A stretch of DNA of 64,000 nt from Mytilus trossulus. Lineage: Eukaryota. Shown here one piece after another: positions 6,205 to 60,764 of this stretch. Where the stretch lies: NCBI RefSeq assembly GCF_036588685.1, contig NC_086379.1:47678001-47742000 (forward strand). Reading direction: 5' to 3'. The notes below the pieces were generated by a model. That model was not told the origin of the DNA. It saw nothing but the letters and a program-made list of their open reading frames with translations, and searched no databases. The translations under genes were made by a program, and so were the position numbers. Each line of letters opens with the position of its first letter. Positions within the stretch are counted from its first letter, which is position 1.

Positions 6205-6380
6205 ATAGTTATTGAATGTAAAACAGTGCAATAGATCAAAATATCTTTCCCTCGGTATGTATATCAGATCATTGTTATATCGCCCGAAGCCAACGGCTGA
6301 GGGCAATAGAACAATGAGCTGATCTTCATACCTCGGGAATATGTTTTGATCTATTGCATAGATACATATTAAATAACTGT
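6205..6380. mobile_element. Fold-back hairpin element 1 (~176-bp imperfect palindrome)
   Basis: tgcaatagatcaaaatat / atgttttgatctattgca arms; cap AGCC-AAC-GGCT at 6288-6298. Confidence 0.8.
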
Positions 6381-6871
6381 ATCATTTTTAACCACGAATA
6401 ATATCTAAATTCTAAATCAAAATGTAACGCAAAATCATAGACACTGGTCGAAGTATAATACCATATGCATGGACAAGTAATACAGGCAAATTTTGCGCAT
6501 CTTAATCTACCGCAAACGAGCATGAACTAGGAAAATTGATTATTGGAAACTTGTCTTAACAATGGGAGGGATGGCAAAAACTGTATTTTATGAAATACTG
6601 CTATGTCTCTTTTTTTTTCTTTAACGTTTAGGTACAAGACTATTTTAATATTGTACTTTTAAATTATTTGCAATCATTGAACATTCTAGTTACATAGCAA
6701 CAATCAAATTATATGGTTTACCACTTAAAATGCTAATTTATCCTTTATATAATATTTTTAAATATAAGTTATCAGTTTTATTTTCTGTTGACATCTTTTT
6801 TTTTCAATGCTGGTGATGATAATGCTTCGATCTTTTATAACATATACATTTTTGAACAATTTACTTTTAAG

Positions 6872-7161
6872 GGCTGACAAGCAATGAATTGGCGATAGAA
6901 CCAAGTGATAAACACCTTGTTAGATTAGGAGGCAAAATTGGAATCAAGTCATTTGAAGAGTTTTTCATTAATTTGGGAATGAATAAAAAAGATTGGGAAA
7001 GTACTGAGTATATGTATGCTGGTCACAGTTCTGATGGCATAATGTCGATGGCACTGAAACAATGGAGAAAGACTAAGTTGTCAAAACTGGAAAAACATAC
7101 CTTGCAAGATCTAACTGATGCCATGAGAGCAGTAAATCTGGGTAGTCATCTTATATGTCAG
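6872..7161 (+). CDS. Death-domain gene, antepenultimate exon (first death domain)
   Basis: Acceptor ttacttttaag|; LTSNELAIEPSDKHLVRLGGKIG...LGMNKKDWE...MALKQWRK...LQDLTDAMRAVNLGSHLICQ fits the death-fold pattern; donor cag|gtacag, phase 0. Confidence 0.8.
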
Positions 7162-7675
7162 GTACAGAACAAGTTTGATAATATCTGTAAAATAGAATTT
7201 CGTTTGAAATAATGCTTGAATATTAAAACATATTGCAATGATTTGAATTTTTTTTTCTATGATTATCATAATGTTTTTATTATAGTTTATCGTAAGTCGA
7301 AAAAATAAAGTCGTCTTCGTTGAGAACCAAAGTGATATGTATTTATTTCTGAAAACAGTTCTTTTCTGAATTTATCTTTATATCACATTCTTCGATTAAT
7401 TTCTGTTATTCCAATACAGTATAGTGCAAAGTGAAATAAAATATCTGCAGATAACTGAAAGTTTGTTGTTAAACTTACATATGTTCAAAAGTCAGGAACT
7501 TTGTCAGTTGGTGCAAATAGTTGTAGCTAGAAACAGCATCTATAGATGCACAAATTTGTATAGAAACAATTTCTGTTTTGTTGAGCATCTTCCTTTTTCA
7601 TTTTTGGAATATTTTGCCTTGTGTGCTGATATATTAAATGTCTTTTCTATATTTTAAACTATTTCGTTGTTTTAG

Positions 7676-7703
7676 GTATTCAGAGAAAACACGACGTTGT
7701 TCG
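7676..7703 (+). CDS. Death-domain gene, 28-bp linker micro-exon (VFRENTTLF)
   Basis: ttgtttttag| ... g|gtaagt; phase 0 in and phase 1 out, which matches both neighbouring exons. Confidence 0.8.
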
Positions 7704-8296
7704 GTAAGTATTACATTTTTGGGAGAAAACATATAATTTGATTAAGACAATAACAATTTTTTTTTTCATATGAGATTAAAGTGCTGATTATAGATTAACA
7801 AGGATAATTCATCAATATTTTCAATATTTAAAATTTGACTACAACCTTGTTTTGTTATTTAATGTTTATGACCCAAAACTTTTTTTTGATATTCTAATAG
7901 TTTAAGATTGTGTATCGTCATTTTCGTTTGTATTATTCTTATAGTTTAACAATTTTACCAAACAAGGATTGGATTGCATGGCGTCATTGAACCAAATGTT
8001 GACGCCTTTGCGACATTTTTTTTTTCAAAATTATTTTGTATTCTTAAACAATGCCTACTAGGACTTAGGTAATAATGTGATTATCCGAATTCATATCGAT
8101 TCATATTTCATTTTTGTTATCATTCAGTAAAGCTTTTTGCTAAAGTTGGATGTCGGCTTGGTTTCTTTTTTTCCCTTGTTTGTGTGTGTATAAATACGCT
8201 TCAAAGTAGAGTCACAATTGAAAATAACACAGTTTATCATAACACTGGAAAATAACTTATTTGTGTAGCTCTTTAAATTTATATTTATTGCACTAG

Positions 8297-8616
8297 AAAT
8301 AGCAGACTTCAATCTCCAAGCCATTCCAAGTGATCACCATTTAAAGGAGTTGTCAAACCAAATAGGAAATTGTCCACTGCAGCTGGGAATAGAACTTGGA
8401 TTAACCTTCACAGAGGTTGAGCAGAGTTTATTTGGTTTTCCGAAAGATTTGCCTGGTTTGGTTGAAGATATTGTGATGAAATGGAAGAGAAAGTCAAAGG
8501 TTAAAACTATCCATAGTTTGATGCTCGCACTTGAACGAGTAAACGCAGGTGGAATCAGATATTTACTTGACTTATCAAAAAAGCTCGCAGATGCTAATCT
8601 TGCTAATATAACATAA
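8297..8616 (+). CDS. Death-domain gene, terminal exon (second death domain)
   Basis: Acceptor tttattgcactag|; EIADFNLQAIPSDHHLKELSNQIG...LGIELGLTFTEVEQ...IVMKWKRK...TIHSLMLALERVN..., stop TAA at 8614-8616. Tandem C-terminal death domains are seen in mollusc ROCO-like immune proteins (inference; upstream exons are outside the window). Confidence 0.82.
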
Positions 8617-9997
8617 ATAACTTTTAAATAGTATTGAACTTTTGTTACTTTATGTCACCTTTGACATTCTGAAGAGTGTTAGTTTTGTAAATTTATTCAA
8701 GTATAATGTAGTATGCTTATTTTGTTGTTATTTTGTCTTGAGCAAGTCATCACAAAAACTGGAATTATTCGCATTTTTTAATAGTAAATTATTACTTATA
8801 TACAATATACATTTTCACTTAAAGTATGTGTAAGAAATAAGCTTTCATCATACCGCTTGTCACAGTGAACATTTTTGTTTATTTCTTGAACATTTGCAAA
8901 TCAGAAGACTAACTTATTTTTATATTAGGTTGATATGTATATCATTTTCCTTATATCTGTTTATAATAACAGACAGTCTGATGGTGTTGGGTAAAATTTG
9001 AAAATAATAGTAAAGTTGTTTAAATAGTTATTTCTGACGTACAATTGTATACAGTCATTTGTTAGTTTGATTTTCAGATCTCAAATTCAATTCAAAGAAT
9101 TGTGTATTGAATGCTTAAGTTGTCCATGTACAACTTAATTGTATTGCCTTAAAATTAACAATGTTTTCTTGGTTTCCTTATATAAGGAATTCAAACGTTT
9201 CTAAACTTTAAACTGATGCATTGCCGATATTTTTTTCATGAATAGATGTTTAAAAGTTTATAAATTAATTAAGTTTCGAATTTTTTTTTAGTGTTTTGCC
9301 TTTGAACGTTAAATGCATTGATATTCTTTCAAATTATTTTACCATTTTATATTTTTTCAACTTTATAACTTTCCATAAAAATGTTATGAATATTTTCAAC
9401 TCCTTTTTTTTGCAGCAATAAAGCGTCCTTTTGCATCAATGATACGTTTGGCCCATTTATAGTTTATAAATATGTACTGATACTTGTAGTTTACGTTTAG
9501 TAGTTGTGAGATTGCAACAATTGTTTATGAAAATAATATTTCTATCAAAATAATATAATACCTTGACATGTTTGTGGGATGAGAACCAACAGTTAAAACT
9601 GCACGCATACAACATCTTCTCGTATCTATAGGATTGAGACAATAATACTGTATATTGTTTATAATAAGCTGTATTTGTTATGCTTTACAACAATAAAAAT
9701 TACATACATATCACTATCAGCTTATGATGGTTTGGTTTTACTGGACAATATTGACTTCTGCCCATGCCAATCAGTTTACAAATAGCAAAGGGAAACAATT
9801 GTAATACTAGTATTATTTTAAATAGAATCAAATCGATAAATTGCAAATCAACTATCCATGCCAGAAGTAATGATAATTTAATAGCTGCATGTCATTTCCA
9901 TATTTTGTTATTGAGTTTAGCAGTTTTTGCATAATCAAAAATATATGTGAAAGGAGATTACAACATTCAAATCATATTTGAAGTGAGGATATTATAA

Positions 9998-10240
9998 AAA
10001 GATGTGGTATGTTTGCCAATATGACATCTCCTTACAAGACACCAAATGACACAGAAATTAACAAGCATAGGTCACCCATCCGCTTTCAACAATTAGCAAA
10101 AAAACACATAGTCAGCTATAAAAGACCCCTAAATGACAAATGTAAAAAAAGCAAATTCAAATGAAAAACAAATAATATATGTAACATAGCAGCAATCGAC
10201 AATCAATGAAACACAGGCTCCTGACTTGGGACAGGTACAT
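9998..10240 (-). repeat. Abundant SINE-like interspersed repeat (other fragments ~13010-13140, 13776-13875, 20430-20495, 28955-29075)
   Basis: The aagatgtggtatg..tgccaat..gaca end and the tgaaggccgtacggtgacc motif recur in the window; contains caggctcctgacttgggacagg, whose reverse complement is shared with the 35273 family. Confidence 0.7.
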
Positions 10241-16600: not shown

Positions 16601-19518
16601 AATCAAAAGAGTTGTTCCAGCTGTCACTTGCTAGATCAAGTCTATATTCTCGTCCTTTGTTGTTATGTAAAGGAAGGTCATTTCAAGTATTCAAGCATTT
16701 AATTTAGTCAGTTCGATGACGTCTTTGTCAATATCGTTTATCAAAGATATCTCAGTGATTTGAAACATTCGGTTCTACTGGTATTATAAAAAGAAAAAAA
16801 ATAGATATAGTATGATTGCCATTTAGTATGGATGTTGTAGTTTTTATAACCAGAAATTGTTTAAAGAAGGTTAAACATTGGTTTTTTTTCTTTTCGTGCA
16901 ACGTGTTTTGCTGCTTTAATGTCACGTGCAGACGTGAAAGAGGTTCGTTATTCACCGTGTTTCGTGAAATCGGTAAAAAATCAACGTGCAAGACATTCAT
17001 TTTCAATTGTTCGTTCATCCTTAAATGGAAATTTTATTTCGCGTTCTTACGTACCCCCAACCCCCTTTACACGACTCTCTTTATAGTTACTTGTGGACAG
17101 AAAAATGTTTTTCGACTTCCATCCTTCTTTCAAAAATTCGTTATTTTTTTTCTTCTTTTTTAATTGAATTTACGTGTTTATGTATGCAATGGACTTACAT
17201 ATACAAATGTACTAGAAATAACTGGTATTCGCTATTTATTACTATATCAATTACAAGTATACTATCCATAGCAGTCACTAATATACTATAGAGATATCGG
17301 TGACTGCTGTGCATAGTAAACTTGAATTTTATAGTCGATATCAAATGCAAGTTATTTTTAGCTATTTATGTTCGTAAAATGCAGATTCTGAAACAATGGA
17401 GAGCACTCACATAAAATTTTCATGTCACAAAGTACGTCCTCTGAAATTGTTGGGAAATACTACGGTAACCATGAATACCGCTCAAATGTTTAATGTTGCT
17501 ACGGGCCGTCTTTAACTTTTCTGTGGGAGGGAGACTTCATTAATTAATTGACAGAGTCAGTAAAGCAAATGTATGAATATGAATCTGGAAGCTAGAGATG
17601 TGCATACCAACTATTCAAATATAATGTAGCACTATGAAGTTAATTTAGTAGAACATGAAACAAACAATCTTCAAGAACACGAAGAACAGAATTGTCTCTC
17701 ATCGATAATGTTTTGCGTTGACTGAGGTGACTTATAAGTTTGTGTTTAACAACAAATATATGTGTTCTTAAGTATAAATATAAAAGATTGCCTGTTATAA
17801 TTTTCTTCACTGTCCAAGCGCCAATGGAGTATTCCTGTGAAAAAAGGTCTCTAAATTGCCAGGAACATACTCATAATTAAATTAAAAAAAATATTACATA
17901 AACTATTACAATATATACAAATGACTTATTATACATCATCGTGGTCTTCCATATTGAAAAGTAAGTGGTCCCTGCTACAGAAGATGAAACAAATAGTCAG
18001 TCAAAAAACGGAAGCTAGCGGTTTAATGTATACGCATTCTAGATTTCTATCTTTCTTTCTTGCAATAATCACTATCAAATTATAGCAATTTTACAAGTAG
18101 GACATTTACAAATACAAAAATCATTTATTAATTAGGTCAGTAAAGTGCGTTGAACTTGTTTTCACAATACTATTGAAAACAAAATATTTCAAAAGTTAAA
18201 CATGTCTTTGCTCTAATTGCCCAATCAGGTGAAAGAAAATTGAGAAAATGAAATATTATGTGTCACAAGCACGTTTGTCGTAGACAAATCACTATTATTA
18301 AATCAACTTTAGAAGGAAACTTTATTTTATGGAAAGCACTCAGAGATTTTATCATTTACGGAACCGTCGCAAGTGAGTAACTTAGCATGTTCCAATTTCC
18401 GGTAATTGCAGACGACCTTGAGGAATGATGTATTTACCGCGTGCTACTTTGTAGTGCGTTTTGCTTAAAATTGGTAAAAACTTATTATTCATTTCCCGTT
18501 TGGCTATGATAGTCTAAAAGCATCAAGACAAATATTCTCTTACGAAAGAAAAAGATATTTGTTTGAACTTCCGATTATATTTGACTGGCAAAAGTAATTC
18601 ATATAAATGTACTTATATGCAATGTAATGTAACTAATGTGTTTTTCTGTATATACCTTCGTCTAACTTAGGTGATACCAGAATAAAATGATATATATAAG
18701 AGTAATATTTAGGGGGAAAGGTTACTAGGTCTTATTGAACGTAAATTTATACAAATGTAATTAATACAGTGCAGATATTGAACGATAATATAACACATCA
18801 TATACACGCTAGAATTTAAAAAGATTGAAACAAAGCCAAAGAAAGTCTGAGTTAGTCCGAAATCGAAACTAGCACAAGATCTGGCCGGCTTGTCTATTCT
18901 CGTACATGTATGACATTTACTACATGTACCTGTTAAATTTTGATAACAGCATGCCATATTTTTTAAATATTTACTTATTTTGTTTGCAGTGTTAGTTTCA
19001 AATTTGTGTCCGATTAATTAAGATATATTTTCAATTCCCGCGCGACAATAATTGCAAATTTTCAATAACAGCTTCGAGGAAACTTTAAATACTAGTTTTA
19101 TGCGCGAAAAAGGAAACAAGACATTAAATCAAATTAGTTGAGCTACATTTAACCTCTATAGTCGTATTGTGTTAATTCATACATCGAACTCCCAATGTAG
19201 TAATGACGTTGTTGTTCTTGCTATTCAACCTGACAATCATTCATTTTGCGCATGCTCTGCTTCTCTCTCTGGAGTACAGTGCATACAGTTCATCTTAAAT
19301 TCGATTTGTTTCGTATTCTCGGTCTGTTTATTGTTATTAATGATATTTTCTAGTATGAAACGATCTTTTATTTTCACAAAATAGAGTCCTTTAGAATAAC
19401 TGCTAACTAAGATTGAATACTCATAATTATATAAACAAATTTACTCGATAATTTAAAGAAGACGTTGCATAAACTATTAAAAAAGGACAATTGGGTTATG
19501 ATAATAGACAGTATATAT

Positions 19519-19685
19519 ATAGATTCTTACATTGATACCAGTGGATTATCGGATTTATCCAATCGAGATAGTTAAATTATCAATTTTTAAGTTCGAGCCG
19601 CCTCGGCGAGTACTTTAAAATTTATAATTTAACTATCGAGATTGGATAAATCCGATAATCCACGAGTAACTATGTAAGAATCTGT
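19519..19685. mobile_element. Fold-back hairpin element 2 (~167 bp)
   Basis: gtggattatcggatttatccaatc / gattggataaatccgataatccac arms; cap GCCG-CCT-CGGC at 19597-19607. Confidence 0.85.
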
Positions 19686-22600
19686 TTCTCTAATGATTAA
19701 AAAGACATTTTCTTTTTTGTTTACCGAAAATCCCCTTCGAGTGCCTTTCACATTGCACGAAGTTGTCAATTTCATTAACACCTGTTATCATATTTTGGTT
19801 CATCCAGTTAGCTAAAAAGGTCATGACCCTTAAAATCATCCAATGATCTTCTGAGATCACCAGCAACCCCACGTTGATTAAATTTTTTTATACAATGGGT
19901 TCGAAAAGGGATAAATTTCAATAGAATTAGAGAAATATATATATCTGAACACAGGGATTAAAAATAAGCATTGTAGTCAGTAACTGTTCTTTCTCATATT
20001 ATGTAATTTCTAAAGATAAATGCATTATAATAAATTATAGGTTGATATGATTTGAACCATTTTGTTCGAAAATGCCATAAGTTCACGTGTTATCAATATG
20101 ATGTCATATGTACATGTTATAAAATAAGCATGCCTCCGAATTGAGCATAAACGGTAAGAAAGTTCGATGTATCTCTTTAACCACTTAGACACTGAAAAAA
20201 ATTCAAGCGGCGAATAAAATTTTCAGATTTCCTTTCCATTTAGATTTTTTGTCAATCATCATGAAGACCAGACGATTTTCCGTAATTTTGTACCGTGAAT
20301 TCCATATGTCTTTCCGTATCACAACTTATAAATCATCTGGTAGGTAACGAATTATCTCATGGAAAACACTAGCTAGGTAGCACCTAACTCAGTAATATAC
20401 ATCAGTATCTGACCATAATGTTTTACGTTTATAAATTTTTATTTGGATGGAGAGTTGTCTCACTGGCACTCACTACACATTTTCCGATATCTATATAACG
20501 TTGCCTAGTATAGGTAGGCCTTTACACGAACGGATAAGTCATCAACATGACAGTAACATCTTTGTATCAGAATACAATTTGGGTGTATAATATGGCTTTA
20601 AAGTAAAACGTTCATATCAAAATATTAAAGACATCATCTGTCAGCGGGTCCCCCTTACAAAAAGTTATGGATCAGCCATTGTTAAGACTTCTCCTCTGAA
20701 ACTACGTGGTCAACTTTAACCAAACTTGGCCATAATCATTATCGGGGTATCTAGTTGAATAAATGTGTTCGACGGCCCCGCCTACTTACCAACATTCCCG
20801 CTATTAGGTCACAAGCACTATGTAACGAATTTAAAAGTATCTTACCGACTATCTTAATTAACATGTGGTATCTAGTCTAGTGTCCTACAAAAGTTATCAA
20901 GTCTTCAAAACTGTTACTATTATGAACCAACTTCCATTGGTCTATTTATTCAAAAACCAATGCCAACAATAACAACTTGTTAGCTTTAAATTAGTTGTAT
21001 GGAATTAATTTCTATCTTTCATTATTCATTTAATCGTCTGTTGAAACATTTAAGATTTGTTTCCCACCCCCATGTTGTTTGTAGAAACAAGGAACACAAC
21101 TCCACTACTAACCCAATATGGAAACTTACTAACCTGATATGGCACCTTACTAACCTAATATGGAATATACACGAGGTTGCTCTTAACTAACTATTCTTCG
21201 AAATGTATAGGAGGTAAGATAATATTATAGATAGAGAAACTAAGTTCAGCAAAGTAAGATCTACAAAAAGTCAAGTGCCCAAAATTGTCAATTGACCCCT
21301 TAAGGATCTTAGGCCCTTTATAGTCATTTTTCTTCAAATTTTGTAATTTCCTCCTCTATAACCTCACAGCCAAATTCAATCAAACTTAAATTGGCCACAA
21401 TCATAGTAAGAGCATCTAGACTTATATAAATGACTCCGCCTACGAACCTGCCAACATGGCTGCCATAGCTAAAAATATAACATACATGTAGGGGGATGCA
21501 AGTTTGGCCTATTTCTCTGAAACTACAGCAAAAGTATAATGTGTTTTTGTTTTTTTTGCATCAATTGTAACCAAATATAACAGATAAGCGACATATGCTC
21601 ATTGGAGCCTCTATGTTTATATTATTAGATAAATGTAAGTTAATAATTCATTATGCATTGATGCGAACGTTCGAAATGTTATTAAATGATTAAAACGAAA
21701 TTTAGTCTTACATAATTATTGTTTTTTGTGCATTCATATTTCCATATTCGCAAGTTAGCGGAAAGTAAACAATAAAAAATCTAATATTCTATGAATACAA
21801 TTTTTATACAACATACGGATTCACAATATTGATAATTCTTTTTCATATTTTTTGAAAAGTTTTATGTCGTTGTGTTTATCTTAAAAACAAGTTTCCTCGG
21901 TAGTTTGAACAAAACTTTTACATTATAATTGGGCAAAGATTAGAAAGTAATGATTTAATCTAAATGTAAATCTAGAAATTCCAGTTGGCTCAAGTTATTC
22001 TTTTCCATTTATATAATAATTTGTTTTATATTTTCCATTTCTAATTGAATATTGGCTGTAGAAGAGATTTTCTGACTAGTTTCTTTTAAATCTTATTATT
22101 ATAGCATCGTGAAATATAAGGTGTCAAACATGTAGGTCTTTAAAACGATTTAACCTCGATGTCAAGGTCTAGTGATCATTGTTATGTTGTTGGTTTTTAT
22201 CAAAATTAGCGGTAAAAAAAAGAAGAATATTAAGGCTATTTAATGTTTATAATGGTAAATGTGATCTCAAAATGTAACTTCTCTCAAGAACACATGTAAA
22301 AAAAGGTGAATTACAGAGGAAAATCATTAACCATGATAAACCGACAAAACAAATTTTAAAGCAAAAATAAAAAGCTAAATGACAAATACGATTCTGCAAA
22401 ATACAGTTAATTGGTACCGTTATAACGTTTTTATAAGATATGTAAATCCTGTTCGCTTCCAGTGCGGGACGTCTTTTGTTCACACTTATATATGTACTTA
22501 TAAACAGTAACAGATAGCGAATATTATCGTTATTCAATTATACATGTAACAATATAGCGGAGCATGATACACACATGTTTTCTTACGTTTTTAAGATATA

Positions 22601-25457: not shown

Positions 25458-26047
25458 TTTTGATCGGATAACGTCACTTATTTACATGGCATCAATTAGG
25501 AGATAACTGTATTGTATTTTAAGCTCCGACGGCATCAATTGGGAATTTGATGGTCGCAAATTAAGTTTACTGGCGACGCGTTAGCGGAGACGGTAAACGG
25601 GTATTTGCGACCATCAAATCCCCAATTGATGCCGTCGGAGCTTAAAATACAATATTGTTATCTCCATTCTAATGAAACTGACAGAAAACAACTTTAAAAC
25701 ATGCATTTAAAATCTGTCATATGCCGTCTACGCACGCGCGTACGTCCCATAGCATCAATTGTCAATTGATGCCATGTAAATAAGTGACGTTATCCAATCA
25801 AAATGAACGTTACAAACGTTGTTGCATTAGAATTGACAATTGATGCTATGGTACGTACGCGCAAGCGCAGATGGTATATGACAGGTTCTAAATTCATGTT
25901 TTAATGTTTGTTTCTGTCAGTTTCATTGGAATTGAGATAACAATGTTGTATTTTAGGCTAATGCGTCGCCAGTAATCTTAATTTGCGATCATCAAATCCC
26001 CAATTGATTCCGTCGGAGCTTAAAATACAATACAGTTTTCTCCTAAT
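25458..26047. mobile_element. Hairpin element 3 (25498-25830) nested in an inverted older copy of the same family (25458-25497 + 25831-26047)
   Basis: Palindrome 25499-25665 with cap CGC-GTTA-GCG. 25458-25497 is the reverse complement of 25764-25803. 25831-26047 is the reverse complement of the body plus a partly deleted hairpin. AATT occurs at both junctions. Confidence 0.85.
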
Positions 26048-26180
26048 CGTTCATTTTTCAACGCCGTTATTTGCTAAAAGGATATAATGCCTTTTTTACC
26101 CCCTCTGCCGTGGTACTCTATCCGACTGAACGCTTGTGATGTCACGATCATCAATGCGTTTTTGAAAGTAAACATTCAGA

Positions 26181-26313
26181 TATAGCATGTTTTTGAGGAG
26201 TATTTGCGAAAAATACCAATCTTGAGAATGAATTTCACTCGCCTTACGGCTCGCTAAATTTAGCATTCTCTCGACAGGTACTTTTCGCAAACACCCCTCC
26301 TAAACATGATATA
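26181..26313. mobile_element. Fold-back hairpin element 4 (~133 bp, diverged)
   Basis: tttgcgaaaa.tacc / ggtacttttcgcaaa and gagaatg / cattctc arms; cap GCC-TTAC-GGC at 26241-26250. Confidence 0.75.
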
Positions 26314-35272: not shown

Positions 35273-35746
35273 CAGTTAACTGCTAGTAGTCTGTTGTTAA
35301 TTATGTATTATTGTCATTTTGTTTATTTTCTTTGGTTACATCTTCTGACATCAGACTCGGACTTCTCTTGAACTGAATTTTAATGTGCGTATTGTTATGC
35401 TTTTACTTTTCTACACTGGTTAGAGGTATAGGGGGAGGGTTGAGATCTCACAAACATGTTTAACCCCGCCGCATTTTTGCGCCTGTCCCAAGTCAGGAGC
35501 CTCTGGCCTTTGTTAGTCTTGTATTATTTAAATTTTAGTTTCTTGTGTACAATTTGGAAATTAGTATGGCGTTCATTATCACTGAACTAGTATATATTTG
35601 TTTAGGGGCCAGCTGAAGGACGCCTCTGGGTGCGGGAATTTCTCGCTACATTGAAGACCTGTTGGTGACCTTCTGCTGTTGTGTTTTTTTATTTTGGTCG
35701 GGTTGTTGTCTCTTTGACACATTCCCCATTTCCATTCTCAATTTTA
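35273..35746 (+). repeat. Well-preserved SINE-like interspersed repeat (possible Nin/Deu-type central domain)
   Basis: Three copies in the window (also 16325-16600 and an inverted copy at 43650-43776 + 46451-46590). The central tttaacccc...cctgtcccaagtcaggagcc motif also occurs in the 46780-47020 family. The domain name is tentative. Confidence 0.75.
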
Positions 35747-35830
35747 CATACTATTTAAAGCAGTACATACATTTATGTATAACTATAATAAACTGAATGT
35801 GCGGTTGTGATCAGTACCAACCTACACATT

Positions 35831-36190
35831 TAATGAATGGCTATTATTTATTTTGATTTTATTGAACCATAAAACTAATTTTTGACTCTTAACATTGAAT
35901 AATCCGCGAAGCGGATTATGTAAAATGTGAAGAGTCAAAAATTAGTTTTATGGTTCAATAAAATCAAAATAAATCATTGCCATTCATTATAAATAAATTT
36001 CTATCAAAAATAAGGCTCAAAGAACTTTTTATATTTTTTATATTAACAATAACAAGCGTACACACATGTTGGCGTATGAATACTCAACGTCAGAGTGGGC
36101 GTGTCGCCATCAAAATTGACAACATTGAAAATAAAAATAATAATATTAACCAATCAGTAGACAGTAATAACACCAAATTTATTTATTAAT
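35831..36190. mobile_element. Fold-back hairpin element 5 (hairpin 35831-35989 plus body ending near CCAATCAG at 36150)
   Basis: Near-perfect arms ttttgattttattgaaccataaaactaatttttgactctt; cap CCGC-GAA-GCGG at 35904-35914. Confidence 0.85.
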
Positions 36191-37740
36191 GAATATAGTA
36201 TTTCTAAAACAGTCAGTTGAATCTGTTATACAATGCTCTATACTGTCAGAATCTGATAGAATAATTGTCAAAAACTGTTCAATTATAGAAATGTGCACAG
36301 CTGTTCGAGGATAATACAGCATTCTATAACAGCTTATATGGATCTCGTTATAAATATGTCCGGAGAACTGTAATACAAATAATTGTGGACAATTTACAGA
36401 GAATATTCTTAAGGTGCCAGGAAAACTGTATACATTTGTTCTTCCTTGTATCCATGGATATCTGTATCGAAGGTCATCATCTTGAAATTAAGTACAAATA
36501 ATTTTGACAAAAAATTTATAATTGGTTTCATGACGTCAGATGAATAGCAAGTTTCCAGGTGTTATCGATAAATAAACAACTAATAAGAAACCTCAAATTA
36601 AAAAAAAATCTGCATATGTTTTTATAACTATAAAATGAATAGTTTACATTATACAACTTATGTACTTTTTTTCTGAGGAAAATTCTTTAATTTGTCCACA
36701 TTTAGAAGAAGTTTACTTATTTTAATTGCTTGCTTCCAGGAGTGTAACCCTCCTCTTAAAATCCGGTGATCGCAATACGCATGGATATGTCATTAAAATA
36801 AACAGTTATATGATTGTACATGTTAAACACGTGCTCAATACCCATGCTTTCTGTTATTTGTTTACTATAAGGTGACAATCGGTAAACTTCTGCTTCAAAA
36901 CACGGTATTTTATTAGCAGCCTTTTTTCTTAAATCATAACAGACCATGACAGACAGAGAGAAATAAAATTGACGATTAGACGATATATTTGCGTAAAAAA
37001 AATGAGATAATCGTGCACATAGGACCAAGTTTATGATAATTATTATATACATGCATTGGTTCAAGAATTGGACAAACATGTTTTTTCACCATTCACTCGT
37101 TTCATATGACTTTAACGAACACAAAAACTAAACTGATCTGAGCAGACTAGCATGTACTGGAATCTAGTTCAAAGTCAATTACAAATATTGACAATCAAAC
37201 CGGTCAGATTGAGTATGTTAAATCCGATGTCTTGTGTGCATCGAATATCCCGCTTTCTGAACGTTACGAATACTCACAATATCTCTTTAATGGTCCCATA
37301 AGTGATCTGTTGCAAGGCAAACTGTATGTTCTTATCCAATGTATCCCTATTTTAGAGTGGCAGATCAAATTTCCCCGACTTTCATTACGGAAGTCTTGTA
37401 TTACAGGACCGACAAATCTATAATATCGTTAATTTATTCTCATACTGAACATTGGTATCTGATTGTTAAGCAACCAGCAATCATCCAATTAACAAGATCG
37501 TTTGCTTGTATGTAAATGAATACTTTCTTTCTTAGTAAAAAAAAAAAAAGCAAAATAAGTAACCTGCCTCATCCAACCCCTGAGTATTCCAACATCCTAC
37601 TTTAACCGACATATTTTTATGGTCCCAAAATAAGCCTATCCTTGCAGGAAAAACTTTTTCTGGTCCCCCATTGTGTCGGATAAAACAGGTTACACTGTAT
37701 ATGCTTTGACAATCATCTTGAATTTCGTTTTTCATGAATT

Positions 37741-40662: not shown

Positions 40663-41598
40663 ATTTATCATATATTTAGTACAAAATACAGCTATTTTGT
40701 ATATCTAATAAAGGTTCTTTTTTCCAGTCTGTATCACCTACCCTGTATCGCATACCCCGTATCGCATGGCTAAACCCGTATCGCATACCCCGTATCGCAT
40801 GGTAAAACCCGTATCGCATACCTTTTTTTTTTTTTTTTTTTTTTTAAACTTAAGTCAGTTTTTTTTGGGTTTTNNNNNNNNNNNNNNNNNNNNNNNNNNN
40901 NNNNNNNNNNNNNNNNNNNNNNNNNNNNNNNNNNNNNNNNNNNNNNNNNNNNNNNNNNNNNNNNNNNNNNNNNNNNNNNNNNNNNNNNNNNNNNNNNNNN
41001 NNNNNNNNNNNNNTCATTGTTTGGTATGTAACGTCACGAACATCAAGTTTTTACAACAATTTTTTTGGCACCCTAAATGCAACTATAAAAAATACAAAAC
41101 ACTCAATAATACAATAATAAACAAAATATTTTCAAAACAACAGATTGTAAGGTAACCTGGGTGTTTTGTATAAATAATTGAGCAGTTATTTTAAAGCTTT
41201 GAAACAAGACAAAAGCAGAACTGAAGGTAACCCAGTGCTATGGATCAGAAAACAGTTCATATAATATAAAACTCTTCTGTTGAAATATATGATAAAGCGT
41301 ATAATACATGGCAAAATCCGTATCACATGCCGTATCACCCTCGACCAATATCATCCCTCGGGCCTAAGGGCCCTCGGGCTGATATTGATGTCTCGGGATG
41401 ATACGACATATGATACGGATTTTGCCATGTATTATTCTCTATTTATCATATATTTAGTACAAAATACAGCTATTTTGTATATCTAATAAAGGTTCTTTTT
41501 TCCAGTCTGTATCACCTACCCTGTATCGCATACCCCGTATCGCATGGCTAAACCCGTATCGCATACCCCGTATCGCATGGTAAAACCCGTATCGCATA

Positions 41599-41629
<31 letters not shown>

Positions 41630-42180
41630 CTAAAGTCAGTTTTTTAGGGGTTTTTTTTGCTTCAGAATTTTTTTTCTAAAAATAGGTAATTTTTTGGAAT
41701 GACGTCATTGTTTGGTATGTAACGTCACGTACATCAAGTTTTCATATTGTATGTGACGTCACGAACATCAAGTTTTTACAACATATTTTTTGGCACACTC
41801 AATGCAACTATAAAAAATACAAAACACTTAAATATATACAATAATAAACAAATATTTTCAAAACAACAGATTGTAAGGTAACCTAGGTGCTTCGTATATA
41901 TAATTGAGCAGTTATTTTAAAGCTTTGAAACAAGACAAAAGCAGAACTGAAGGTAACCCAGTGCTATGGATCAGAAAACAGTTCATATACTATAATACTC
42001 TTCTGTTGAAATATATGATAAAGCGTATAATACATGGCAAAATCCGTATCACATACCGTATCACCCTCGACCAATATCATCCCTCGGGCCTAAAGGCCCT
42101 CGAGCTGATATTGATGTCTCGGGATGATACGACATATGATACGGATTTTGCCATGTATTATTCTCTATTGATCATATTTT
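40663..42180. mobile_element. Head-to-tail dimer of a ~726-bp hairpin element (hairpins 41283-41455 and 42009-42180)
   Basis: Body-hairpin-body-hairpin; the body has cccgtatcgcat repeats and a poly-T run; caps GGGCC-TAAG/TAAA-GGCCC. Confidence 0.85.
40874..41013. other. Assembly gap (140 N)
   Basis: Run of N inside the first unit of the dimer. Confidence 1.
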
Positions 42181-42612
42181 CTATAATTAAATAAATAACC
42201 AAGGATGAATTGTATCTGTACTTATTCATTAAAACATGTGCATGTATGGTCCTGCAAGTACATCCTACCAATATGTTTTTGTTTTTCCATCGCCCAAGCT
42301 TACGCTTTTTTAAGACAGACTATTGTCAGGTTTCTTTTCAAATGTCGTTCCAGCTTCATTCACCAATAAAAACTGACAGCCACGAAGCATCAATCTGAAA
42401 CTATCATGTCATCAACTACTTTAAAATTCATTGGAGATTGACAGATTTATATCTTAATCTTCAGTTAGATACCATGATGCATTGCTTATAACAAAGTTTC
42501 CACTTCTGTTAGGTGGGACAAATATATGTGACAGCACACACGTTTTTAGTATGGTTGTCTCACTTGCAAAAACATCCATGTCCTTTTTAAGTTTATATAT
42601 ACAGTACAATTA

Positions 42613-42757
42613 GGCAGCAACCATTTGATTTTCTGGGGGGGGGGGGGGGGGGTATGGTTTTTTCTACACAAAGTGTTTTTTTCGCCTGTTTTTTTTCTTT
42701 CAATTCTTTCCAAAAAAAACAATAGCCCCCCCCCCCGAAAATCAAATGGTTGCTGCC
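42613..42757. mobile_element. MITE with 21-bp TIR and TTA TSD (Zator/PIF-Harbinger-like)
   Basis: tta|ggcagcaaccatttgattttc...gaaaatcaaatggttgctgcc|tta; internal poly-G and poly-C tracts. Confidence 0.88.
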
Positions 42758-43776
42758 TTACATTCTATTTGAAATGAAGTTAAATGATGGGGGATAGCTG
42801 TCGGATTGACATTTACCCGCAGCTGTTTCCTCTGTGCGAAATAAAAATCAAATTTCATTGCCTAATAAAGTTGTTTAAATACATCTAAAGTTTAACTACA
42901 AATTACTTGTAGTAATAAGAAAAAAAAAATAAAAAAAAAACAAAAAACATTGTTTTTCGTTGCTTATTAATTCTGCATTTTATTTAATCTCTTACTGTAA
43001 ATAAATCACTTAAAAGAGAAATAACAAATGGAATATAACATTTCCTTTTTTGATATTTCCCACGTTCCCTGAATAAAAATATTGAATAGTTCGTTGTATT
43101 CACATAAACAGTAGCAATGACTTTTCCTTTTGATATAATTTCACTAGAAGCCAATAATTCTAATGGATTTCTAATTAATTAAAAAGCGATTTTTGTACAA
43201 ATCCTTTATAAATTTCTCCAAGCAGAACACTAGTTGCTAATTCAACCCTCCAAGGTTGTATATGGTAAATTTAATAGTTATGAAAATCAATAAATTCTAT
43301 GTTTTACGTACTCAAAAATCTGTTCTTCAGACAATACAACTTTGTTATTAGCCTTGAAGAGTCAATTGACGATCATTAAATAGTAATTTCTCTAGCTAAA
43401 ACTAATATTTGCTAATAACCAGTTATAAGATCATAAGAGTGTATTTCTAGTGCTTATACAATTGGATTACTGTCAATCACAATGGCTACTATACCAATAA
43501 AAAAATCATCAAATACAATTATTTCTAACGATAATATATACACATTACGATCTTAGTTTTAGACTTTTATCGAACAAGAATCTGAATCGATTATCGGCAT
43601 TTATTTTTAGAGTACAGTAATATATGTATAATTTATGCAAATCATAATATTGAGAATGGAAATTTGGAATATGTCAAAGAGACAACAGCCCGACCAAAGA
43701 GCAGACAACAGCCGAATGTCATCAATGGGTCTTAAATACAGCGAGAATATTCCGCTACCGAAGGTGACCTTCAGTT

Positions 43777-53820: not shown

Positions 53821-53864
53821 GCACTAGACGCGCGTTTCGTCTACAAAAGACTCATCAGTGACGC
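53821..53864 (-). ncRNA. Minimal type I hammerhead ribozyme within a retrozyme-like repeat (53783-53975)
   Basis: Minus strand GCGUCA-CUGAUGA-GUCU(UUUGU)AGAC-GAAA-CGCGCG-UC-UAGUGC: intact CUGAUGA and GAAA cores, stem II, palindromic stem III, GUC cleavage triplet; stem I imperfect. Confidence 0.8.
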
Positions 53865-54523: not shown

Positions 54524-55512
54524 ATAAAAAATATAATGTCAATAACGCAATGTAAAAAAATGTTCTCTATTTTTTCTACTACACATTTTTCAATTTCCCC
54601 AATAAGTTTGTATAAAGCAATTTGCTCTATGAAGATTTAAAAAAAGTTATTTACAAGCTTCAAATTATTCTAGTCTTCATTAATTGTTATTGAAAACTAA
54701 CTTGATAAAAATCAGTCGTCGAGTAACTTTGATAGTTATCAAATGTACCAGGATTATTATGATGAAATGGATGCACGAGATTAGCATTAAAATATTAGCA
54801 AATCTGTTCGTAGCTTTATAAATACAAACAATCAAATGCGTTCATGTTTATTTAAAAATTTGCTCCATTGCCTCTCAAAAAAATGAAGTTGCATAGACAA
54901 AAATATTTTTATACAATGCTTCCGTGCCTATCAAACATCACCTTTCATCCTGAAGGCTACAGGAACTAGACATTAATATCTGGTGTAGATGTTTCTCAAT
55001 GTGTATTGTTATTGGTTTTCCCCTCTGGAAACCGTCAATGTCAACACTTTATAACTCAGATGGTTAATTAGTGGAGAGATTTTACGATCCAATGCCCATT
55101 TTACTAACTATGTCCTGTAAGTGCTTATAAAGGAAGTGTGTTTAAAACGGACGATTAAACGCTCCTGGTTAGCTGTCAAAGCGTCTGTTAAATTGCCTTC
55201 AAGGATACTTCTCATTCGACAATTACCATCTTTATCTGTTAGCAGTTTCTACATTTCTCGCTAAATCCCTCTTTCTATTTGTTGAACGTTAGGAATCATT
55301 GTTAGTAGAAAAGTATAACAAAAATACCGAACCCTACAGCAAATGTAAAATGGAAAAGTCCATAACAACAGACGAGATCGAAATTTTTCAATCAAAAGTA
55401 CAAAACGAGCAATTGAATTAATTTTTTAGTTTTATTAAATAACAAAATCTCATACTTCCATGAGGTAGCTGAACATCCAGTAGCATGTATGCCATTCTTT
55501 ATTTTGAACTAA

Positions 55513-57291: not shown

Positions 57292-58048
57292 AGTATGAGT
57301 TACACTAACACAACACCGAATTTAGGTCAATGTGAATATCAATTAGAATTAGTAAAAATACAATGTAGTATACCATAAGGCTATAAGACGGAGTGTTTGA
57401 TACACACACAGAGGCTGATAAAGTATGTCAAATATTTACCAAAATGCAGAATTAAACTTCTCTAACTTATGGATGTATTACCTCAGTACATAAGCTGTTT
57501 TTGCAAAACGTTTCAGAATATTTGTTCCTCAAAGGTATTACACTTCGTATTTTATAATTTATCAATTTGATTTGAGCGTCACTTGTGTTACTTTTCAAAA
57601 GGTAACACAATTCTGATGTACAAAATTGTAAGCCCTTTTAAATGTTTAAGATCTATGATGATATTATCTAGCAACACATTTTGAGAATTGTATTTAGTAA
57701 ATAGCGCTATTTTGTTCTTATTAATAAACTGCAAACCAAACCTTCAATAAATAAATACATAAAGATGATGTGAGAATAAAATTCCAATATAATTCTTCCC
57801 CCCACAAGTTTACAAACAACAAGTAAAATTAAATTAGGGTTCACCAAATGTATTGATGGCTGCATTAAAACACACACATCCCCAATACTGTTTTTACGAT
57901 TCTTGCCCTATTTTTGATGTTGACGTTACTCTCACATTTTGTCACTACTTTTTTTGCTTTGTTTTACTCTCAATTGTTTGCTTTGTGGATGTATACCTTG
58001 CCAGATAAGAGAATATAGTTATCAAAGGTACCAATATTATAATTTAGT

Positions 58049-58086
58049 ACGCTAGACGCGCGTTTCGTCTACATAAGACTCATCAG
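58049..58086 (-). ncRNA. Truncated hammerhead motif (cores intact, 5' strand of stem I missing)
   Basis: Minus strand CUGAUGA-GUCU(UAUGU)AGAC-GAAA-CGCGCG-UC-UAGCGU; homology stops immediately upstream of CUGAUGA. Confidence 0.7.
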
Positions 58087-58532
58087 AGAAGTTATACATA
58101 AAATTCATCAACATAAACGAATAATATGATTTAGAATATATTGTCACTTACAATAAAGACAAATATATTTGATGACCATAACTTGATGAACCGTAATACA
58201 TTAGCTTGACATATGGTATTTACTAATGGACCTTATGAATTGTTATTTTCAGATTTAATTTATTTCTCTTGAAAATTAGCAAAGATAAACATCTTACAAA
58301 CTAATTGTAATAATCTTTTAATTCCTATTTCTGTTTGAATAGTGAAAGTAGTCCAAAATACAAACATTGAAATAACACAGAATCAACAGATAACTATAAA
58401 AATTGATATAGTAGTTTGAAAATAACTTTTAATCTATATAATGGTTTCAAAGTAAATAAACAATATAATTGACCTTTCGACCAGAAGAGTTTACGTGTAT
58501 TACGCTGCACATAAAGATAGTCCAGATTTTAG

Positions 58533-59032
58533 ATGTTTTCATGCCGTTGATTGTATCAGACCCTGTTTTTAAATGTATTGGAATTGGATTAAAATTGAGA
58601 GTTCACGTCACGTTAATGACAAGTCTAAAAAGAGAGATGTGTTGAATACGTCAATGAAACAGTATTCCATTGAAAATCAAAACTAAAAAAAAAAGACACG
58701 TAAATATTAGACATGTGCAGTGGCCTTAATTGTAGTTTGTTTGATTGGTGAATTAGAAAACACAATTGCTGCAGTCATTTGGTCTTTGATGAAATCTTTT
58801 GGTGATCATCTGTCTTATTTTGATATCATAGATAATATGAGACTATTAATATCATATTTGTTTTTATTGTAGGTAAATCGGATGAAGAAAAACCAGTAGG
58901 TTAGTATGTTTGATCATTACGAGAATAAATCAAAATTCATCTTGAAAATATTTTGGCACCGGTTTAACATGTTTTCAATGCCGTTGATTGTACCAGACCC
59001 TGTTTTTAAATGTATTGGAATTGGATTAAAAT
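58533..59032 (+). repeat. ~63-bp direct repeat flanking the micro-exon (58533-58595, 58969-59032)
   Basis: atgttttc(a)atgccgttgattgtaYcagaccctgtttttaaatgtattggaattggattaaaat occurs twice. Confidence 0.9.
58873..58899 (+). CDS. 27-bp symmetric micro-exon of the membrane protein (G-KSDEEKPV)
   Basis: tttttattgtag| ... g|gttagt; phase 1-1; in frame with both neighbours. Confidence 0.7.
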   Translation, partial: VNRMKKNQ

Positions 59033-59529
59033 GAATAGTTTAAACTAAGATGGGGTTAGAAAAGTTAGGATCTTATGACGAATCTTTCAACTTTTTGATC
59101 TTCCATCGACAACTCCTATTATAGAGCACACGTACAGTCATGTTTAACACAATGAACCTACACGTGCTTTAACAATTAGGATACATTTCATGTCACTGAT
59201 CTTAATTAATTTTACCAAAGCCTCTAATTACATTACAGGACAAGAACCGTCATATTTCGTCTGGATAATGTGGTACTAATTAATTAGCCATGTTAATCGA
59301 TCAAAAACAATAGAAAAGAACTACATTTATATTAAGCGTAGACGAGGAGTACGCCGAATTTATCACTTAACCAATCGTTTTACTTGAAAATATACAAATG
59401 TGCAAAAACATAGTGCAACATGCGTATTCTATACAATTAAAGACTCTATAATGGTCTTGTACTTTTGTTACATGCATAGCAGTATCTAGAATACTCTACA
59501 TTACAAGCGAATTTTAACTCAAAGGCGTT

Positions 59530-59645
59530 TAAGTTATAGTTATACACCGAGGGAAAGGTATGTCTGGATAAGAAACCCCGTCGGCCGGAGGCCGTAGGGG
59601 TTTCTTATCCAGACATGCCGTATCCCGAGGTGTATAACTAACTTA
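59530..59645. mobile_element. Fold-back hairpin element 7 (~116 bp)
   Basis: atgtctggataagaaacccc / ggggtttcttatccagacat arms; cap CGGCC-GGA-GGCCG. Confidence 0.88.
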
Positions 59646-60650
59646 CACCCTATTCTAAACTCTATATTGTTAACATTGATTATCTAATGAAAAAAAAAGA
59701 TAGCATATGTTTTATTGACAATATCAAACCATGATTTATAAGATTTTGTTGTTATTACATGAAAACCCACTAGTAACCTTTTTGGTTGTCTTCGTTCACA
59801 CTTTGACAAGTGAGTATGTTTTACCAATGTCAAGGTTGTTTTGCATATTCCAAATAAATCCTTGGGTTGATATGGATCAGCAGGTCAAGGTTTACCGTAT
59901 CGTGTATTCATATTAAAAACAAAAAAACACGTCATGCTCCTTGTATACAGTTGTCAATATGGAAAGGTATGAGACGGACGACATTAATTAGCAAGCGTTG
60001 GATTTGGTAGATGAGACTTATTTAAAAGATAAAGGCAATATTATAACCCAAAGTACTTACCTGTATCAGTTTAATAAAGGTAATCATAACTATATTTTCT
60101 ATCTTACGGTGTTATGGGGGGAAAAAGCCCCCCCTCTTCTCGAGAATGAATACACATTCATATTCGGACCTACAAAGGGATAAGTGTGTCTGCAATAGAA
60201 ACCCGACTTCCAGGCACGCTCAGCATACAAAGATACAGATTAAATATTTCGTAACTCCCTCTTTTGCGGAAGAGGGGCTGATCCAGCTGGGGTTCCCAAC
60301 TAAAAGAAAGGGGTCGGGGTTCCAATAAGTCAAATAAATTGATCTTTTAAATCTGGTCCGACCCCGCGCGGAACCCCTACCCCGGATCGGCCACTGGATA
60401 ACGGGGGGGGGGGGGGGGGGGTCGAGAGTTAAAATCACCCTTTTTATAATAGAAATATATGAATGGGATAAAAATAAATATTACTTTCAGCAAAGGAGTA
60501 ATTGAAGGATATTTTTTATTTAAAATAAATGCTTAATTTTTTTTCCTTATTGGAATTTCCTTAAATATTTTTTTTTAATATCTTAAAAGAATTTGTAATG
60601 AACACTGTAAGTAATTTCTTCTGTTCATAATATTTAAAGAATAATCAATT

Positions 60651-60764
60651 TCTATTGTTACGAATAACAATAGACTTTGTTTGCGGGATGTAGAAGCAGG
60701 GGTTTCCAGAAACCCCGCTTGTCACAGCCTGTGGTCAAAATCCATTGTTATTCGTAACAATAGA
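60651..60764. mobile_element. Fold-back hairpin element 8 (~114 bp)
   Basis: Perfect 21-bp outer arms tctattgttacgaataacaat / attgttattcgtaacaataga; cap ggggtttc-ca-gaaacccc. Confidence 0.8.

Follow-up and report, generated by a model that had tools for sequence, protein, structure and literature searches.

Palindromes and their host elements

The window, by which we mean the whole 64-kb stretch of Mytilus trossulus DNA that was analysed, contains nine palindromes, all of them where a preliminary description of the sequence had placed them. That description took them for fold-back elements in their own right; they are not autonomous fold-back or MITE units, and each of the nine is the end of a longer repeat. 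The host units are high-copy, non-autonomous repeats of 270 bp to 1.3 kb, and the palindrome makes up between a fifth and a half of the element. Eight families had been counted; the window holds seven elements, since the hairpins at 59530 (H) and 60651 (I) belong to a single 1.3-kb element.

The family A copy (6122..6385, + strand) is 5′-truncated and carries a 3′ palindrome at 6207-6378 with a TC/TC mismatch at 6252/6333 and an inverted tip at about 6283-6302. Truncation at the 5′ end, seen in A copies, is also known in Helitron2 elements (PMC3627910). A non-LTR retrotransposon 3′ tail was considered for family A and rejected: the adjacent LINE ends at about 6060-6070, A starts at 6122, and A has neither a tail nor a TSD. 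The family B element of about 425 bp (19511..19935, − strand) has its palindrome at 19521-19683. Two CGAG blocks are present, at 19565/19638 and 19595/19608, and a third, degenerate one (CCAG/CGAG) at 19540/19663. The ATIR of this element (19684-19694) is complementary to its far terminus (19926-19935), and the hairpin-side end has a (TA)n tract. The family C element (340 bp, 25494..25833, − strand) contains a palindrome at 25499-25665 with GA/GA at 25575/25587 and a GTTA loop; the ATIR at 25666-25674 pairs with the terminus at 25825-25833. Family D is represented by an element of about 270 bp (26046..26313, + strand) ending in a 3′ palindrome (26181-26313). Its stem contains TC/TC at 26239/26251 and, further from the loop, a degenerate CTTG/CTCG; the ATIR of this family is weak (a 6-mer only).

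The family E element (35831..36198, − strand) has a palindrome at 35831-35989 whose stem is without GA/GA. Its far end is provisional, being based on one other copy, and its ATIR (35989-36000) pairs with 36175-36186. Two tandem units of family F, about 730 bp each, occupy 40664..42175 (+ strand); their 3′ palindromes (41283-41455 and 42009-42179) have two CTCG/CTCG blocks apiece, and the sequence of the 5′ terminus (40664-40677) recurs in reverse complement at 41283-41296. An assembly gap (40874-41013) lies inside the first unit with colinear flanks (unit positions 1-213 before it and 308-739 after it), and it has no effect on the finding because the nearest hairpin is 270 bp away. The H-I element (59527..60831, − strand) carries the long terminal palindrome H at 59530-59650, whose loop is GGA and whose stem holds a CGAG block at 59549/59627, and the second hairpin I (114 nt, 60651-60764), which lies 66 bp from the other end and lacks GA/GA. 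The ATIR at 59643-59650 pairs with the terminus at 60823-60830. The 5′-terminal TTACAC also has a complement, GTGTAA, some 45 nt downstream, with which it could form a 5′ hairpin of the kind known from HINEs.

The stems are AT-rich, 50-90 bp long and interrupted almost solely by tandem mismatches of one kind. The cap is a GC clamp of 3-5 bp closing a loop of 3-4 nt; this had been described for all nine hairpins and is found in eight, the hairpin at 60651 having a 2-nt loop and a mixed clamp. The suggested GNA-type loops hold as a tendency, with GAA, GGA, GTTA and GTAA in some families and AAC, CCT and CTTA in others. The exact heptamer of the d(GCGAAGC) mini-hairpin forms the stem apex in family E (35906-35912) and in L036_2171 (GGCGAAGCC). 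Such a cap is no general feature, because the remaining families carry other loops.

Termini and class of the elements

The hairpin was found at one end only of the longer repeat in families A, B, C, D, E, F and H-I and in the L005 family. The mobile units reach 135-1200 bp past the palindrome on one side only, and their two ends are not TIRs. By plan, the element opens with an ATIR of 8-14 nt at its 5′ terminus, followed by the body, by a subterminal copy of the ATIR in reverse complement and, directly after this, by the palindrome of 110-180 nt, which in all families ends 0-10 nt before the 3′ end. Perfect ATIR pairs lie exactly at the BLAST-defined termini in B (10 nt), C (9 nt), F (14 nt) and H-I (8 nt), and that of family E (12 nt) lies within 12 nt of its provisional end; five families thus have a 5′ ATIR complementary to the subterminal 3′ ATIR next to the hairpin. 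Whole units occur head to tail in F, B, D and A, where the unit junction falls inside the extended stem. Insertion into TT or T-rich sites is a trait of Helitron2/Helentron elements, and here the picture is mixed. The 5′ ends begin with T in F, B and H-I, as do some 3′ flanks of F; the flanks of H-I are G and C, and many B copies sit in (TA)n. By eye, no TSD was seen in four B copies with non-(TA)n flanks, in the F array of the window or in one F insertion. The latter had entered a 60-bp host tandem repeat and left the host repeat unit intact. No empty insertion site was recovered from other individuals.

On the surface the palindromes, being high-copy, imperfect and 110-180 bp long, could pass for ordinary DDE MITEs or fold-back elements with randomly decayed arms. 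We rejected a DDE-type MITE and regard this explanation as extremely improbable, given that the hairpin occupies just one end of a longer unit, that the two ends are not inverted repeats of one another and that no TSD was visible in the copies listed above. The Helitron2/HINE terminal plan, on the other hand, matches the elements described here (PMC3627910, PMC4067079, PMC7492417). The palindromes are thus probably, if by no means certainly, the 3′-terminal hairpins of at least seven sequence-unrelated, non-autonomous rolling-circle families of Helitron2/Helentron type (HINE-like). Family D, which lacks a clear ATIR, counts against this reading, as do the unusual length of the palindromes and the G and C flanks of H-I, which do not show a TT target.

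The genome offers candidate partners, with at least 115 Helitron_like_N matches, of which many fall within open frames 2000-3100 aa long; one such frame carries Rep, PIF1 and APE endonuclease. An autonomous Helentron with these termini was not found; one 3′ flank was readable (L091) and showed no long palindrome within 6 kb. An HUH nuclease or a Crypton had been suggested as the mobilising enzyme. The Helitron2/Helentron terminal plan and the uninterrupted Rep-helicase-endonuclease frames favour the former over a Crypton tyrosine recombinase, and a Helentron presumably moves these families. Nothing points to a Crypton recombinase, nor to the attC-like sites that had also been invoked.

The tandem mismatch

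All GA/GA and TC/TC coordinate pairs listed in the preliminary description are exact. Its argument that random decay should not converge on one mismatch was borne out in a larger sample, comprising the window and 90 fetched loci (~290 kb), the loci having been picked for holding three of the families. GA/GA-type loops (TC/TC on the opposite strand) account for 14 of the 27 isolated 2×2 loops in this sample (52%) and occur in nine of the 14 families possessing such a loop. Simulated neutral decay gives a GA/GA share of 1.5% (P ~ 4e-19 for 14/27). Three more unrelated families with the motif (L005_2510, L036_2171 and L057_323) were met by chance in the flanks of the loci.

CGAG is present on both arms at 9 of the 14 GA/GA-type sites, giving exactly C:G, G.A, A.G, G:C. 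At seven of the nine window sites the two arms carry the same tetramer (CGAG/CGAG or CTCG/CTCG); of the remaining two, 6286/6299 has CGAA/TGAG and 25575/25587 has CGAC/GGAG. With the sole exception of family C (CGAC/GGAG), 5′-Y-GA-R-3′ faces 5′-Y-GA-R-3′ between Watson-Crick pairs (13 of 14 sites). Judged from this context, the Y-GA-R sites would be expected to adopt sheared G.A geometry.

The mismatches are not copy-specific decay, because they are present in the family consensuses. The consensus of family A has an 85-bp stem whose sole 2×2 loops are two TC/TC, and all four CTCG of family F are intact in 31 of 41 copies, the changes being mostly CpG decay. Presence in consensuses and the GA/GA share of 52% against the 1.5% expected also argue against decayed DDE MITEs. 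The mismatches are variably spaced, some beside the cap and others 17-38 bp away down the stem.

In seven families (A, B, C, D, F, L036b and L057b) the loop and the inner mismatch are 3-5 bp apart, which yields a similar module of 20-25 nt. This raises the question of inheritance in place of convergence: the 3′ apical module (TC, GC clamp, loop, GC clamp, TC) would come from related Helentron ends and be an ordinary conserved terminal motif, comparable to the CTRR of Helitron1, and non-autonomous families do usually copy the ends of their partner. We consider this explanation unlikely, as the clamp and loop sequences are different in each family and the outer CGAG blocks, another 17-38 bp down the stem, are embedded in sequence that clustering shows to be dissimilar between families. 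It also leaves unexplained that the motif is a mismatch. We note separately that, should the apical module descend from related Helentron ends, the independent events would be fewer.

Strand polarity and a possible mechanism

The mismatches are strand-consistent within the family in all five families with two sites. When the hairpin is set 3′, TC/TC falls on that strand in 7/7 families. The GA strand is computed to be more stable than the TC strand by 1.2-6.6 kcal/mol in 9/9 families, and in all five families having both features the G...A-closed loops are found on that same GA strand. A mixture of GA/GA and TC/TC on one strand had been reported at 6205; it is real in this copy and absent from the family consensus, where both sites are TC/TC on one strand. 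GA/GA is visible at 6286/6299 because the tip of this copy is inverted relative to 14 other family A copies. A GA mismatch feature that is always on the same strand and common to unrelated families looks selected.

Tip orientation (flip:flop) is 41:1 in F, 34:0 in B and 14:1 in A. These counts bear on whether another ssDNA-specific enzyme is involved, namely an IS200/IS605-like Y1 transposase, a Crypton tyrosine recombinase or a parvovirus-like rolling-hairpin replicase. In favour, one A copy and one F copy have flipped tips, and the unlike hairpins at the two ends (H, I), without TIRs or TSDs, resemble IS200/IS605. A rolling-hairpin telomere is expected to give comparable numbers of flip and flop, so the imbalance disfavours rolling-hairpin replication. 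Since the ATIR plan is moreover specific to Helitron2/Helentron, we think it quite unlikely that an enzyme of this kind is responsible.

A more credible alternative, though still an improbable one in our view, accepts the same Helentron-like elements and supposes that no enzyme reads the mismatches. They would be kept since perfect long palindromes are unstable (cruciform extrusion, hairpin nucleases, replication slippage), and a tandem G.A would break a perfect palindrome at least cost to the single-strand hairpin. The palindromes are apparently unstable: numerous deletions in the contigs of B copies have the palindrome tip at their centre, although this may be an assembler artefact. The positions beside the cap and down the stem, with their variable spacing, also fit, as does the stability retained by the GA strand while the TC strand loses 1-7 kcal/mol. 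Instability alone, however, predicts neither the 7/7 polarity nor G...A loops on the same strand. Perfect stems are also tolerated, as the same genome contains a perfect 76-bp palindrome (L035_2106).

A role at the RNA level is very unlikely. Transcript hairpins could use tandem G.A pairs, which are stable in RNA too, to shape or block small-RNA processing, and small RNAs often come from TE hairpins. On the other side, no Rfam family matched, and among the sequencing runs listed none is recorded as RNA, six minor holders being merely guessed to be so. The ATIR and the terminal position would remain unexplained.

Returning to Helentron-type termini, a Rep-helicase would unwind the element end and the two strands would fold into unequal hairpins. 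The GA strand would retain near-full stability, aided by G...A-closed loops such as GAA, and the TC strand would bear open 2×2 loops. The unequal hairpins could confer a fixed polarity on an otherwise symmetric palindrome, and the strand-specific fold would provide a structure readable on ssDNA for termination or cleavage by an HUH enzyme. The tandem mismatches would also make cruciform extrusion of the long palindrome in duplex DNA costly. The earlier proposal of structure-defined, strand-asymmetric ssDNA sites agrees with the mismatch type, its presence in consensuses and the strand rules (5/5 and 7/7); that the mobilising enzyme recognises the hairpin we infer. We infer, too, which strand the enzyme reads. 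Stable GA pairs on the transposed strand do not fit without a further assumption, because the strand displaced in the Helraiser model is that with the 3′ hairpin, and in the present elements this strand has the destabilising TC/TC. The GA mismatches may reveal the strand that folds when the elements move.

Comparison with known systems

The closest likeness is to the HINEs (DINE-1, HINE-Mo and Cg_HINE of the Pacific oyster). They share the 5′ ATIR complementary to a subterminal 3′ ATIR directly upstream of the 3′ palindrome, the lack of a TSD, 5′ ends starting with T, tandem repeats and tandem whole units, 5′-truncated copies, and a very high copy number in a bivalve-type genome with Rep-helicase-endonuclease genes. 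The published 3′ palindromes of HINE/Helitron2 elements, however, have stems of 5-20 bp situated 8-35 bp from the end, and those found here are about ten times longer. The tandem GA/TC mismatch and its polarity are unmentioned in the descriptions (PMC3627910, PMC4067079, PMC7492417).

The 3′ hairpin of Helraiser (Helitron1) acts as a terminator; cleavage is confined to ssDNA, and the loop is sequence-sensitive while the stem is exchangeable (PMC4778049). An ssDNA 3′ hairpin as terminator, structure and loop outweighing stem sequence, and circular head-to-tail intermediates are the points of likeness (PMC4778049). Helraiser differs in its 19-bp perfect palindrome, CTAG-3′ end and A/T target, and has neither an ATIR nor the mismatch motif. 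The CGAG block forms stable sheared pairs in DNA hairpins and is known as consecutive blocks, in repeats of human promoter and centromeric DNA (PMC10085684). In the transposon ends described here, where it is known from sequence alone, it occurs as single blocks spaced along long Watson-Crick stems.

The subterminal imperfect palindromes of IS200/IS605 and integron attC sites are likewise strand-specific folded ssDNA substrates that take their polarity from non-paired bases. These systems are bacterial, use Y1 or tyrosine-recombinase enzymes and have short hairpins with extrahelical bases rather than tandem G.A, and they have no homology or gene link to the elements here. The left-end hairpin of the parvovirus MVM contains a GA/GAA bubble, a purine mismatch that makes the arms unequal in an HUH-dependent replicon. 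Parvoviral ends flip and flop, whereas the orientation is fixed in the mussel elements (41:1, 34:0 and 14:1).

Results

All nine long palindromes named in the preliminary description fold as stated there, and the GA/GA or TC/TC dinucleotides cited within them are found at each position. In the window, G000:C7:47678001–47742000, they begin at positions 6205 (family A), 19519 (B), 25499 (C), 26181 (D), 35831 (E), 41283 and 42009 (two copies of F), 59530 (H) and 60651 (I). A 2×2 mismatch in which GA faces GA (TC facing TC on the other strand) is termed GA/GA-type, and CGAG facing CGAG is termed the CGAG block. At seven of the nine mismatch sites in the window the two arms carry an identical tetramer, giving CGAG/CGAG (CTCG/CTCG when read from the opposite strand); the remaining two sites read CGAA/TGAG (6286/6299) and CGAC/GGAG (25575/25587). 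Two further loops, CCAG/CGAG in B and CTTG/CTCG in D, are one change short of the block. Internal loops were listed both from an energy-free alignment of arm against arm and from the MFE parse. The set was extended with unrelated palindromes met by chance in the flanks of 90 loci fetched from the same genome, where the motif is also found in three unrelated families: there are two TC/TC in L005_2510, two GA/GA in L036_2171 and one site in L057_323 (the last number being the position in the locus). With window and fetched loci combined, GA/GA-type mismatches account for 14/27 isolated 2×2 loops and come from nine of the 14 families having any such loop. Shared descent of an apical module was weighed as an explanation of this recurrence. 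Simulated random decay of perfect palindromes made from real arms, with transitions set at twice each transversion, gives 1.5% GA/GA-type (P ~ 4 × 10⁻¹⁹ for the observed fraction), which bears out the earlier argument that random decay should not converge on one mismatch. The mismatch observation is real and highly non-random. CpG decay, tetramer inversion, template switching and mismatch-repair survivorship were each rejected as mutational sources of CGAG/CGAG, as none gives the paired T-to-G and C-to-A changes fast enough.

GC clamps of 3–5 bp cap about 12 of the 17 long palindromes, in an assembly of 1.3 Gb and about 14 large contigs with a G+C content of ~31%. A perfect 76-bp palindrome at L035:2106–2280 (another fetched locus) has an AT-rich centre with neither GC clamp nor GA block; long perfect palindromes therefore also persist in this genome. 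The 129-nt inverted repeat at 25639–25959 (63-nt spacer) is formed by the tails of two oppositely oriented family C units. Both of its 2×2 mismatches are non-GA/GA and it serves as an internal control.

The mismatches are a property of the families and not of single copies. Families B, C, E and F each have 1,000 to 2,700 candidate copies at 97–100% identity; D has about 600–940 and the H–I element about 380, both at 78–93%, and family A is old (72–88%). It had been allowed that consensus arms might prove perfectly complementary, and they do not: the consensus of family A (15 copies) has an 85-bp stem whose sole 2×2 loops are two TC/TC, and 31 of 41 copies of F keep all four CTCG, the commonest change being CpG decay to CTTG. 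Contigs from several sequencing runs show that the B copy in the window carries private changes and that the majority form of B has a fully paired stem beside its inner CGAG block. Runs with small portions of the queried stretch in common bear the labels of mollusc or gill metagenomes, and the depth of the B family is very high under three organism labels. Many B-copy contigs (runs X1, X2, X3 and X6) skip 43–113 nt centred on the palindrome tip within 19533–19683; this reflects either true centre deletions in a subset of copies or artefacts of assembly at palindromes. The family A hairpin has at its tip (6283–6302) the reverse complement of the sequence seen in 14 other copies, with the flanks in normal orientation; recombination between the arms has probably flipped the palindrome centre. 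Flipped tips are rare (41:1 in F, with the marker outside the palindrome, and 34:0 in B), which argues against parvovirus-like hairpin transfer.

None of the nine palindromes is a free-standing fold-back element; each lies within a longer repeat. A 730-bp unit has the F hairpin as its right end, and two such units stand in tandem at 40664–42175; single F units begin TTTATCATATATTT and end within the right arm. An assembly gap at 40874–41013 falls inside the first F unit beside a long T run, 270 bp from the nearest hairpin. Its sides are colinear (F unit positions 1–213 before, 308–739 after), and ~94 unit positions are missing against an estimated 140 N. Just past the array, at 42612–42758, there is a 33-nt inverted repeat with arms 81 nt apart that ends in runs of 10–12 G and C. 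The hairpin is at the left end of a 425-bp unit in B and of a 340-bp unit in C, and at the right end of a 270-bp unit in D. One other copy of E indicates at least 206 bp beyond the hairpin on the right; at 35400–35750 a repeat of very high abundance (3,915 candidates, 99–100% identity) comes to its end, stopping at about 35747–35760, 70 bp ahead of E. H and I are the two hairpins of a single 1.3-kb element (59527–60831). In A a repeat of up to ~690 bp ends on the right in the hairpin; its other side is variably truncated among copies. Adjacent to A, a non-LTR retrotransposon occupies 1032–6070 on the forward strand, with a coiled-coil ORF1 of 430 aa and an ORF2 (APE and RT) split over two frames (2340–4637 and 4640–5905). 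Its candidate copies number at least 1,500; many are 97–100% identical in the 3′ part and all end at 6058–6071, and judged by these sequences the family looks recently active. Family A as the 3′ tail of this LINE is ruled out, since the other LINE copies stop before A starts.

In B, C, E, F and H–I the far terminus is matched exactly, in reverse complement, by the 8–14 nt adjoining the hairpin. F, B, D and A also have whole units arranged head to tail, the stem being extended by the junction. A terminal 5′ ATIR (a short element terminus complementary to a subterminal copy adjoining the hairpin), a subterminal 3′ ATIR just upstream of a 3′ hairpin, absence of TSDs and a 5′ T make up the plan of Helitron2 and of Helentrons and their non-autonomous HINEs; 5′-truncated copies are known for Helitron2 elements, and tandem arrays and internal tandem repeats for Helitrons and HINEs (PMC3627910, PMC4067079, PMC7492417). 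The objects are Helentron-type non-autonomous elements and not fold-back MITEs. The alternative that they are ordinary DDE MITEs with TSDs is at odds with units that extend beyond the hairpin, and no TSD was seen at four B copies, the F array of the window or one F insertion, where a 60-bp repeat unit of the host is undisturbed. Random decay of MITEs is likewise excluded by the one-ended hairpins on longer units, the mismatches in the consensuses and the observed excess over simulation. No empty B site was found, in that no contig joint skips the B element (18600–20900; four runs, three organism labels); contigs break at the repeat borders and so lend no independent support to the boundaries or to the lack of TSDs.

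With elements oriented by the Helitron2 convention, hairpin placed 3′, TC/TC lies on the hairpin-bearing strand in seven of seven families (A as consensus, B, C, D, F, H and the L005 family). Both sites are on one strand in all five two-site families; the apparent exception is the A copy of the window, with its inverted tip. Using DNA parameters, the hairpin of the GA strand exceeds that of the complementary strand in stability by 1.2–6.6 kcal/mol (9/9 families). Selection for stability only was weighed as a rival explanation of the mismatches. Loops with first G and last A (GAA, GGA, GTTA, GTAA) share the strand of GA/GA in all five families having both. E has no stem mismatch; judged by element polarity, its GCGAAGC cap is on the same strand as GA/GA in the other families. 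A function at the RNA level was also considered; a Rfam scan of the window matched zero families, thus no ribozyme or known RNA accounts for the hairpins.

At least 115 Helitron_like_N matches are present in the genome, many within uninterrupted frames of 2000–3100 aa. One such frame (locus L091, G000:C7:50110000–50119999, on the contig of the window) has the domain make-up of the Helentron protein, with Rep and PIF1 helicase plus an APE-type endonuclease at the C terminus; frames of this type are uninterrupted at 2,939 aa. Copies 99% identical to L091 downstream of the ORF occur in three places; 22.9 kb separates two of these, which lie ~2.4 Mb from the window. From their sequences, L091 and the like copies look like intact Helentrons. 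In the 10 kb examined beside one Helentron ORF (L091), the 3′ flank has no long palindrome within 6 kb, and the homology of the copies ends 4.4 kb past the ORF, where no palindrome is seen. Coordinates compared by eye placed no hairpin match within tens of kb of any Rep match; neither this comparison nor the single L091 flank linked a Rep-helicase frame to these hairpin ends.

Discussion

In bivalves and insects, Helentrons and the non-autonomous elements derived from them rank with the most abundant repeats and act as seeds of satellite DNA. To our knowledge no Helentron has been reconstituted so far, and what their terminal hairpins do is judged by analogy with a single Helitron from a bat. 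A mismatch that unrelated families have in common, on a fixed strand relative to the element, makes a direct, cheap and concrete test possible. The motif is also a sequence signature by which such elements can be found and oriented in genomes, and the families offer a natural case of long palindromes held stable at high copy number.

In DNA hairpins CGAG facing CGAG forms C:G, sheared G·A, A·G and G:C pairs (PMC10085684). The HUH domain of Helraiser cleaves single-stranded DNA only; its 3′ hairpin is a terminator in which the loop matters and the stem sequence is exchangeable, and transposition yields circles with joined ends (PMC4778049). The long palindromes may accordingly be pictured as terminator and recognition hairpins of Helentron-mobilised families; another single-strand enzyme was also weighed in this role. 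The GA/TC blocks would make the hairpins on the two strands unequal, giving polarity to a near-symmetric palindrome, and would impose a penalty on cruciform extrusion. One observation does not fit this picture in its simple form: in the Helraiser model the displaced strand is the one with the 3′ hairpin, and here that strand bears the destabilising TC/TC, leaving the stable GA hairpin to the complement. Either the enzyme would read open pyrimidine loops or the hairpin of the complement would have a role. That CGAG blocks and G…A-closed loops are a strand-marking code of Helentron-type ends, the stably folding strand being the complement of the one by convention regarded as transposed, is a reading we put forward tentatively and consider rather doubtful. 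Were it true, the hairpin of the other strand would be used, for example to signal a pause or cleavage or to prime second-strand synthesis, a step absent from the Helraiser model; this could also explain the persistence of palindromes of more than 100 bp at thousands of copies.

The families described here share the hairpin plan of HINEs and Helitron2, with the ATIR pair present in B, C, E, F and H–I and no TSD seen. They differ in the palindromes themselves, since published ones have stems of 5–20 bp whereas the 3′ palindromes here are very long, and a strand-fixed CGAG-block motif in such palindromes finds no mention in PMC3627910, PMC4067079 or PMC7492417.
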